A DNA stretch of 36,241 bases from Chlorokybus atmophyticus (Eukaryota > Plantae > Mesostigma and Chlorokybus algae): positions 15,893 through 52,133 of the forward strand of contig RHPI01001043.1 of the NCBI GenBank assembly GCA_009103225.1. The letters run 5' to 3'. Under the pieces are notes generated by a model that saw only the letters and a list, made by a program, of their open reading frames with translations, ran no database searches and was not told the DNA's origin. Of this stretch, positions 19,601 through 20,711 are shown in pieces. The position numbers and the translations under genes are program-made. Numbering within the stretch: the stretch's first letter is position 1; each line of letters starts with the position of its first letter.

Positions 19601-20711
19601 GGCCATATGTCTGACTTCCAGTTATGCAGGTGGCTGCAACAGCTGTGTTGTGCATCAACATGCAAAAGGAGTTCCTTGCTGAGGGCGGCTATGGCAGCAC
19701 CCTTGGCAATGATCACACGAAACTGTTGCCTGCTGTTGCAAAAGTCCATGCCTTGCAGGTAAGTATAGGCAAATGCCCTTGTATATGTCCGTGTCAACCA
19801 CATATCATATCTCTCCCACCCCGCGTAGGAGTTGGCGCGACAGTATGGGCTTCCTGTCATGCACATCTTAGAGGCGCATCTGCCAGATCTGTCGGACTGC
19901 CCACCGTCCAAGCTTGCAAGAGGCAACCGCGGGCAGTGCATTGGAGATCAGGTCAGAGCACCAGGAAGCAGCAATGCATCTGAACTGAACTTTGCTGCAT
20001 GTGGCGGAAGACCCAGCCACTCGTGCTGGCTGCAGGGTCTTCTTGGCCGGTTGCTCATCCGAGGGGAGCCAGGAAACTCCCTCGTGGAGGAGTGCTCTGC
20101 CCTTGAAACGGAAGCGGTATGCATAGTCCGTTTGATGCACATGTTATATGTACTGCTTATGCGTGCCTGTAGTAGAAGTGCAGAGTCCTCATGCTGTCTT
20201 AAGCAGGTGCTATACAAGCCTGGCAAAGGGGCGTTTTTCAATAGTGGCTTGACAGAGCTGCTGGAGTACGTAAACGTGCATGCCGCTGGTATATGACGGC
20301 ACACCAAACACACCTAACACACCACTTCGGCACAGGCTGCATGGCATCACTCACCTCATCATAGCTGGCGTCACAACCGAGGTTGGCTGCCAGACCACAC
20401 TCCGCGAAGCCAATGATCGCGGCTATGAAGCGCTGCTGGTTGAAGACTGCACGGAGAGCTATCTTCCTGAGTAAGTGTACACTGCATTTGCTGTGGAAGA
20501 CTTCGCATAAACGAGTTGTTACCATAAAAATTTACAATCTTGCCTCAGACTCAAGGAGGTGACGCTCAACATGATTCGCGCGCAAGGCGCTATCGTTGCG
20601 CGGACTGCAACGCTGGACTGTTTGCGCGCTGCCCTTGCGACTACTTCTCAGGCACAAGGTGACTCTAATAACATATTGGCGGCGCAGAGCCCGCCTACTA
20701 TTTGTGCGTGA
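16632..20711 (+). CDS. Gene B: paralogous tri-domain fusion (AH-C-like + BiuH-like + TrtA-like); TrtA-like domain lacks the canonical catalytic Asp and Cys; ~17 exons
   Basis: Domain 1: [14 protein letters not shown]..|[25 protein letters not shown]|[31 protein letters not shown]. Domain 2: [17 protein letters not shown]|[37 protein letters not shown]|[27 protein letters not shown]|[35 protein letters not shown]|GGVFG. Domain 3: LPFEYDFP|[45 protein letters not shown]|[49 protein letters not shown]. The domain 1-2 linker is obscured by the poly-C fill. Confidence 0.88.
17549..18010. other. 461-nt poly-C run ending in n; most likely an assembly or gap-fill artefact within an intron of gene B
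   Basis: Pure homopolymer terminated by an ambiguous base. The paralogous position in gene A is a short ordinary linker. Confidence 0.85.

Follow-up and report, generated by a model that had tools for sequence, protein, structure and literature searches.

The locus described here raises the question of whether an enzyme domain in which two of the three catalytic residues are gone is a failing enzyme, a rewired one or a non-catalytic protein kept by selection. The domain is the second isochorismatase-like domain of gene B (B domain 2) in a stretch of 36,241 nucleotides from the alga Chlorokybus atmophyticus (contig RHPI01001043.1, positions 15,893 to 52,133 of the forward strand; hereafter, the window). 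Gene B lies next to a divergently transcribed paralogue, gene A, and its second domain resembles TrtA, a hydrolase that converts triuret to carboxybiuret. The original prediction held that two of the three triad residues of this domain have changed while the domain stays open, spliced and otherwise conserved, and that the pattern reflects selection for a pseudo-enzyme, or for a new chemistry using a displaced cysteine, rather than decay. Our analysis favours the first of these: B domain 2 is probably a selected, non-catalytic TrtA-derived domain, and most likely the inactive half of a TrtA-type dimer formed with the corresponding domain of gene A.

Gene B encodes, in order, an AH_C domain (allophanate-hydrolase C-terminal type; PF21986, E 6e-15, with PF00857 hits as well in Pfam), a BiuH-type domain, a linker and the TrtA-type domain. 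The public model of the gene (jgi/Chlat1/1832 = Chrsp14S02227, protein P0001) omits 17460-17537, which is coding, as well as the last part of the exon 18652-18729. The 17-exon model rebuilt here is backed by RNA joints in two spliced contigs, one from a separate public run (X1) and one from another sample of the same study (X4). The parts of gene B, and the counterpart of B domain 2 in gene A, are as follows.

16584-20711, forward strand: gene B, 17 exons, 666 amino acids; exon model rebuilt here, RNA joints in X1 and X4
17538-18055, forward strand: GC-AG intron of gene B, enclosing a 461-base poly-C run and an 'n' (17550-18011)
18056-19307, forward strand: B domain 1, BiuH-type, triad Asp/Lys/Cys intact; exons 4-10
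19630-19758, forward strand: exon 1 of B domain 2, following AG; Asn446 (AAC 19657-59) corresponds to TrtA Asp24, Glu450 to an Asp of the family and Tyr457 to TrtA Phe35; no mismatch to X1 RNA
19829-19951, forward strand: exon 2 of B domain 2; Glu494 corresponds to TrtA Glu72; RNA joints 19758/19829 and 19951/20036
20036-20116, forward strand: exon 3 of B domain 2; RNA joints
20207-20265, forward strand: exon 4 of B domain 2, with KPGKGAF; Lys551 (20216-18) corresponds to Lys129 and Lys554 to Lys132; RNA joint 20265/20336
20336-20470, forward strand: exon 5 of B domain 2; Gly584 and Cys585; Glu582 corresponds to E160 and Tyr609 to Y187; no mismatch to X1 RNA
20549-20711, forward strand: exon 6 of B domain 2 and stop; Gln624 (CAA 20583-85) corresponds to the trans-acting Gln202 and Ile627 to I205, then Ala-Arg in place of the family 'GW'; the final ∼35 residues form a tail of low confidence
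12478-13660, reverse strand: domain 2 of gene A, TrtA-type, live by its Asp/Lys/Cys triad; Asp GAC 13633-31, Cys TGC 12757-55

At the first altered position, gene B reads C-I-N-M-Q (AAC at 19657-59) and gene A M-I-D-M-Q (GAC at 13633-13631). At the second, gene B reads T-T-E-V-G-C-Q, with GGC at 20385-87 followed by TGC at 20388-90, and gene A reads T-S-E-V-C-V-Q, with TGC at 12757-12755. On re-reading the sequence, every coordinate and residue that had been given for the two genes was found to be correct. Gap-free alignment of B domain 2 to the TrtA of Herbaspirillum (PDB 6XIX, E 9e-65; the PDB chain index equals the numbering of PMC7948467 plus 3) placed Asn on D24, Lys on K129, Gly on C162 and Cys on V163. 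Where the TrtA clade has the catalytic triad Asp24-Lys129-Cys162, B domain 2 therefore has Asn-Lys-Gly, which bears out the claim of two changed triad residues, and the BiuH-type domain of gene B keeps its full Asp/Lys/Cys triad, as had also been stated. In TrtA, Cys162 attacks the terminal amide, and Asp24 binds the substrate and is the proposed activator of the hydrolytic water; the C162S mutant is inactive, and the equivalent Asp-to-Ala change abolishes the activity of BiuH (PMC7948467). Judged by these residues, B domain 2 would be unable to perform amide hydrolysis of the Asp-Lys-Cys type. It thus lacks the essential catalytic residues of the active enzyme to which it is homologous, which is the first mark of a pseudo-enzyme; the second, expression under purifying selection, is taken up below. 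All nine TrtA residues that contact triuret or position the glutamine are intact in gene B (F29, N41, E72, K129, K132, E160, Y187, Q202 and I205).

An assembly or base-calling error, or an untranscribed copy, could give the same picture, and the 461-base poly-C run with its 'n' does show local assembly trouble in gene B. However, the run is intronic, and the spliced X1 RNA contig (record 2, 866 nt) covered both altered codons with no mismatch. The same contig matched the window without mismatch over 19373-19559, 19629-19756, 19827-19948, 20336-20470 and 20549-20639, and its joints coincided exactly with the predicted GT..AG introns, given 1-3 nt of ambiguity. The independent confirmation of the two codons comes from RNA; the DNA-like contigs of runs X2 and X3 agree with the window elsewhere. 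The X1 RNA, being spliced and matching both codons, rules out an assembly error as well as a silent gene, so that two objections which the original prediction had raised against itself are excluded, and we regard an artefact as having a negligible chance. The description of the domain as open, spliced and retaining KPGK was confirmed in the same way: all six exons have AG/GT borders, the joints are present in RNA, and a single open frame runs to the TGA at 20709-11. Introns in the window are of the GT/AG type and 70-130 nt long.

The poly-C run was also considered as a break in gene B, and this was rejected: in the X4 transcript, ...ATGCCTAC(A) is joined straight to 18056, so that the run is spliced out as part of an intron. 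The run itself (17550-18011) is almost certainly an assembly artefact, and the public model of gene B is distorted around it. A second GC-AG intron of gene B lies at 18730-18808.

Membership of the isochorismatase-like superfamily was evident from exon 5 alone (PF00857, E 3.4e-12), and 20 family members in the PDB matched B domain 2 at E<1e-5. The domain scored 222-223 bits against TrtA, 170 against the BiuH of Rhodococcus and 134 against that of Rhizobium, and in trees it fell among the TrtA-type rows, apart from the BiuH-type clade. Six residues tell TrtA from BiuH, namely F35, N41, A134, E160, Y187 and I205 (PMC7948467). In B domain 2, five of the six are in the TrtA state (N41, A134, E160, Y187 and I205), and position 35 is Tyr, the BiuH state. 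The AlphaFold model of the domain, built with 65 aligned sequences, had a mean predicted local distance difference test (pLDDT) score of 92.4 and a predicted template modelling (pTM) score of 0.87, with the last ∼20 residues uncertain. In a Foldseek search, the best match of this model was triuret-bound TrtA (6XJE; template modelling score 0.94 by target, root-mean-square deviation 1.1 Å, 51% identity), with the BiuH structures ranked behind it; ranks 1-6 were all TrtA, and the top 50 were all members of the isochorismatase-like family. The TrtA of Herbaspirillum sp. BH-1 (PDB 6XIX, 6XJ4 and 6XJE) is thus the closest described counterpart: it is like B domain 2 in length, aligns without gaps at ∼50% identity, and shares with it K129, K132, E72, F29, Q202 and the V-T of the cis-peptide. 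It differs in that Asp24 is replaced by Asn in gene B, Cys162 by Gly, Val163 by Cys, Phe35 by Tyr, and the 'GW' after Gln202 by 'AR'; moreover, TrtA is a free bacterial dimer, whereas in gene B the domain comes third in a eukaryotic fusion protein.

The X4 contig (1973 nt, spliced, 90-95% and overall ∼93% identical to gene B) is the orthologue of gene B from a sister lineage. It was compared through 40 listed differences at sites more than 30 nt from piece ends, up to position 20065, so that part of the domain-2 differences was classified. In domain 1, 19 differences were synonymous and none was non-synonymous; the linker had 7 and 3, and exons 1-3 of domain 2 had 10 and 2 (M490I and I492V), while one replaced block of equal length (AKVHALQ to QTVSALQ) added three residue changes. 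The domain-2 pieces differed at 30 of 472 nucleotides and the domain-1 pieces at 17 of 281. Two small insertions were reported, both in the 3' untranslated region, and the coding region was free of them in the part compared. The orthologue keeps Glu450 and Tyr457 despite synonymous changes inside those codons, and it also lacks the family Thr at position 492; at least these three departures therefore predate the split from X4. Database searches with the domain region of P0001 and with B domain 2 alone found no close Chlorokybus relative, and the cluster of P0001 had one member.

Gene B was also compared with gene A. Synonymous sites between A and B are saturated in both domains (proportion of synonymous differences, pS, 0.69 and 0.74), so the duplication is old, this being a lower bound, and domain 1 was not homogenised recently; by pS, there is nothing to suggest that gene conversion has lately acted on domain 1 of the two genes. 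Non-synonymous divergence (dN) amounted to 0.156 for domain 1 and 0.389 for domain 2. Tajima-type counts for domain 2 with five bacterial outgroups gave 29-33 changes unique to A and 25-32 unique to B (p 0.29-1.0). The two counts being about equal, the B domain does not evolve faster overall than the live A domain, and accelerated evolution of B domain 2 was rejected. It is 53-58% identical to the TrtA-type proteins of the five free-living bacterial outgroups and 51-59% identical to the best 120 hits in the database, which is at least its identity to A.

The rate is ordinary, and the changes fall at unusual places. In an alignment of 35 canonical TrtA-type domains, 63 columns are invariant to 94% or more; of these, B domain 2 breaks 11, the A domain breaks 2 and the live streptophyte domains break 1 (A vs B, Fisher p 0.016). 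The 11 changes in gene B are D446N, D450E, F457Y, T492I, T560S, C584G, V585C, C599A, F613L, G629A and W630R. This excess over A would suit a domain that was lately disabled and is now drifting without a function of its own, and so would a recent loss of the two catalytic residues, whose codons lie outside the range of the X4 comparison. Nevertheless, such a loss on the way to decay is very improbable. The domain-2 differences to X4 are mostly synonymous and their density matches that of domain 1, the frame is open and correctly spliced, Glu450, Tyr457 and the missing Thr492 are common to the X4 orthologue, and the overall rate against bacterial outgroups equals that of A. Read from the alignments, changes at invariant columns together with intact ligand contacts indicate a functional shift, not decay. 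Neutral evolution, the remaining objection of the original prediction, is contradicted by the mostly synonymous differences and by the balanced relative rates. With spliced transcripts in two lineages, mostly synonymous differences and the rate of A, B domain 2 is expressed and under purifying selection, as expected of a pseudo-enzyme.

An altered pocket under selection could also be that of a rewired enzyme, in which Cys585, beside a flexible Gly, serves as a new nucleophile, or in which another reaction is carried out on a related substrate, with Asn446 in binding. Cys585 directly adjoins the site of the old nucleophile, Lys551 and the pocket are intact, purifying selection acts on the domain, and GGC TGC in place of the TGC GTG of gene A could come from a 3-nt insertion and a 3-nt deletion that shifted the Cys. 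However, the flanking helix aligns to TrtA without gaps, so that Cys585 occupies the position of Val163, and Asp24, the proposed water activator, is lost as well. In a survey of 336 related domains, each with a residue in all four columns, Asp was present in 326, Cys in 323 and Val at the +1 position in 329; the rest of the +1 column was Phe (5), Met (1) and Cys (1, gene B itself). Since the residues otherwise present in this column are Val, Phe and Met, as would suit a buried position, Cys585 is probably, and most simply, a Val-to-Cys substitution in the core rather than a new nucleophile. Gly replaces the nucleophile in 10 of the 13 domains without Cys, which makes it the usual form of nucleophile loss in the family, and the other dead domains have Gly-Val. 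The proposal of a new chemistry through the displaced Cys thus gained no support, and we consider a rewired enzyme quite unlikely. N-K-G-C occurred in 1 of the 336 domains, that of gene B; of its residues, Gly584 is shared with dead domains of other streptophytes. A degenerate-DNA scan of JGI metagenome contigs for TTEVGCQT returned 12 hits, all by chance and outside any isochorismatase-like gene.

These other dead domains occur together with live ones. Dead-live tandems of TrtA-type domains were found in Klebsormidium nitens (P0404), in Spirogloea muscicola (P0002/P0387/P0388; SM000009S23588 and copies) and in the transcripts P0004, P0151 and P0403; the proteins are annotated merely as 'isochorismatase hydrolase'. 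In the first domain of these tandems, Asp24 is changed to Lys, Lys129 to Thr, Ser or Ala, and Cys162 to Gly or Thr, and the second domain is canonical. All dead domains examined keep F29, N41, E72, K132, Y187, Q202 and I205; at position 160 they mostly have Glu, and Asp in Klebsormidium (Trp209 was scored in P0002, P0004 and P0151 only). An AlphaFold model of the 502-residue tandem P0004 had a pTM of 0.86, and its halves are predicted to pack as one rigid body. Like B domain 2, the dead halves have neither the nucleophile nor Asp24, and they share with it Glu450, Leu523 and Gly584. They differ in that the dead domain is fused before the live one in a single chain and has lost Lys129, which gene B keeps; the dead domain of gene B belongs to a gene of its own and follows a live BiuH-type domain.

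Dead copies beside live ones were also found in bacterial sequences. On the metagenome contig JGI Ga0598290_0022986 (L001, 3-983), P0312 is encoded 7 nt after a live TrtA/BiuH-type gene (GVTTEVCVQTT). It is TrtA-like and stands alone, with Asp24 and Cys162 each replaced by Gly, with KPGK kept and with 58% identity to the B domain. P0312 nests beside the canonical P0363 in a clade with cyanobacterial named members (99/90 support); nested as it is among canonical bacterial sequences, it is of independent origin. This pair differs from A and B in that origin and in that the dead copy is a separate small gene of an operon. In Paenibacillus sp. 598K, P0163 (526 aa) has a Cys-to-Gly BiuH-type domain fused to a canonical TrtA-type domain. 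A tandem with two live domains exists as well: P0152 (a EukProt transcript, 472 aa) has two near-identical live TrtA-type domains. In P0172 (726 aa) and P0175 (685 aa) from JGI metagenomes, the last of three domains is of the live TrtA type. The family seems prone to internal duplication and fusion.

Whether the dead streptophyte domains share one origin was addressed with three maximum-likelihood trees that included extra streptophyte and bacterial rows. In two of the three, the A domain joined the live tandem halves (96/94 and 94/90), the B domain weakly joined the dead halves (69/44 and 79/23), and all streptophyte TrtA-type domains came together (63/73 and 80/82). From these alignments, a single ancient lineage of dead streptophyte domains that includes the B domain is possible.

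Gene A (12478-16074, reverse strand) was rebuilt from its third exon on; its public model (jgi/Chlat1/1831, P0156) retains two introns and lacks the N-terminus. Both genes comprise an AH_C-type domain (PF21986), a domain with the BiuH signature and a domain with the TrtA signature. In both, the first isochorismatase-like domain carries the BiuH residues Y35, Y41, S134, D160, T187 and V205 and the triad Asp/Lys/Cys. Identity between A and B is 81% in domain 1 and ∼52-56% in domain 2, whose exons 1, 3, 4 and 5 are equal in length between the genes, with exon 2 being 129 nt in A and 123 in B. Gene A thus shares with gene B the AH_C domain, the order of BiuH-type and then TrtA-type domain, and the exon pattern of domain 2. 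The same domain order is present in Chlamydomonas reinhardtii CHLRE_10g448500 and in other chlorophyte BiuH-TrtA fusions. In contrast to gene B, the TrtA-type domains of gene A and of the chlorophyte fusions all have Asp/Lys/Cys. The genes are arranged head to head around the following feature.

16075-16583, no strand: spacer separating the divergent genes A and B, ∼500 bp, bounded by the gene starts

This spacer is likely a shared promoter region. The X1 run also carries spliced gene-A sequence, in which a loose end at 19151 spans the A exon junction 14191/14128; spliced transcripts of both genes being present in X1, both are expressed in one sample.

These observations bear on the role proposed for B domain 2. 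In the TrtA dimer, each subunit completes the active site of the other with its Gln202, and Asn41 and Glu160 position this glutamine (PMC7948467). B domain 2 descends from a TrtA-type cysteine hydrolase in which the acid/base Asp became Asn and the nucleophile Cys became Gly, and it is still transcribed, spliced and held by purifying selection. It could then supply the trans-acting glutamine (Gln624) and Ile205 to a partner, and its Asn41 and Glu160 could hold the glutamine of that partner. The most plausible partner is the live domain of the co-expressed, divergently transcribed gene A, which would give a dimer in which one pocket is active and the other silent. The silent pocket, with its contacts F29, N41, E72, K129, K132, E160 and Y187 kept, may bind triuret or a related ureide without turnover. 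The argument for the silent half of an asymmetric dimer with A is that the glutamine, Ile205, Asn41 and Glu160 are kept, that dead copies always stand beside live ones, and that A and B are co-expressed neighbours; pairing of A with B and ligand binding by B domain 2 are what these sequence features would predict. The broader claim of the original prediction, a selected pseudo-enzyme rather than decay, is supported by the splicing, the mostly synonymous orthologue differences, the equal rates of A and B, the kept ligand contacts and the recurring dead-live pairs. Of the non-catalytic roles that it named, ligand sensor, scaffold or partner of A, the last is favoured here as a working model.

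Dead paralogues kept through pairing with a live one are known from other enzymes. The 'prozyme' of trypanosomatid AdoMetDC is a pseudo-enzyme partner of this kind for a homo-oligomeric enzyme, a duplicated dead paralogue retained because it pairs with the live copy. Its fold is unrelated to that of gene B, whose pairing with A is putative.

The inactive domain could instead bind no useful ligand and be kept only for folding or oligomerisation of the fusion protein, with gene B acting as a biuret hydrolase through domain 1 and without A. The BiuH-type domain is intact and is the most constrained part of gene B (19 synonymous and 0 non-synonymous differences), and TrtA forms dimers but BiuH tetramers (PMC7948467), so that assembly may require the two interfaces together. 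The change of 'GW' to 'AR' in the Q-loop also speaks for such a role. However, the pocket residues F29, E72, K129, K132 and Y187 would then have been kept needlessly since a duplication old enough to saturate synonymous sites, and the other dead domains always accompany a live TrtA-type partner. We consider a role as scaffold only unlikely, though less so than the rewired enzyme.

Several points weigh against the silent half of a dimer with gene A. Ala-Arg stands in place of 'GW' right after the trans-acting Gln, whereas the streptophyte dead domains keep GW, and this change may alter the loop that presents the glutamine. The F35Y change alone lowered TrtA activity by more than 90% (PMC7948467), and the pocket of gene B, with Tyr at this position, is therefore not fully TrtA-like. 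Selection on domain 2 could stem from the folding or assembly needs of the live BiuH domain of gene B alone. The X4 comparison covers sites more than 30 nt from piece ends and up to position 20065, whereas the altered codons lie 28-30 nt from a piece end (19657-59) and at 20385-90; the inactivation may therefore be older or younger than the split from X4. Finally, the placement of the B domain was not settled in the largest tree set, and approximately unbiased (AU) tests rejected neither a grouping of A with B (p 0.29-0.42) nor one of B with the dead streptophyte clade (p 0.33); over the AU tests that bear on common descent, p ranged from 0.29 to 0.46.

Some further features of the window were noted. 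Runs of GGN/CCN codons (poly-Gly/poly-Pro) at 15934-16143 (reverse strand) and 16311-16420 (forward strand) flank the A-B spacer, near both 5' ends. Downstream of gene B, an open reading frame with a DDE_1 transposase domain lies at 27654-28670 (reverse strand), and long open reading frames with retrotransposon gag, aspartyl protease and reverse transcriptase domains lie at 32909-35767 (forward strand). Positions 4001-5000 have 27% G+C, against 45-59% elsewhere in the window.

To our knowledge, all descriptions of TrtA and BiuH (2018-2020) concern bacteria and present them as ordinary Asp-Lys-Cys hydrolases. Full-text literature searches found no paper linking the isochorismatase-like family with pseudo-enzymes and none linking biuret or triuret hydrolases with algal homologues. 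What is new here is therefore a pseudo-enzyme paralogue, itself a familiar type, in a family without described ones, and if the reading is true, it would be the first pseudo-enzyme system described among the isochorismatase-like hydrolases. The B domain amounts to a natural double mutation resembling a substrate trap, in which the nucleophile and the acid/base residue are gone and the binding residues are all kept. Dead and live copies come in three genetic layouts, as neighbouring genes, as fused domains and as an operon pair, and pairing of the two, if real, would make a clean case of a symmetric dimeric enzyme becoming an asymmetric one-site enzyme.

A wider scenario is put forward tentatively, as one that we think may well not hold in full. 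A dead TrtA-type paralogue would date back to the base of the streptophyte algae and would, over the hundreds of millions of years since, have been retained as a silent half that the asymmetric dimer cannot do without. It would be encoded head to head with the live gene in Chlorokybus (gene B beside gene A) and fused to the live half in Klebsormidium and the Zygnematophyceae, with an independent evolution of the same arrangement in bacteria; its silent pocket would bind triuret or a ureide and regulate or feed the live site. The practical value is modest, the organism being obscure and the role being read from sequence. For the biology of the group, the finding points to a regulated handling of nitrogen compounds of the triuret and biuret type in early-diverging green algae.

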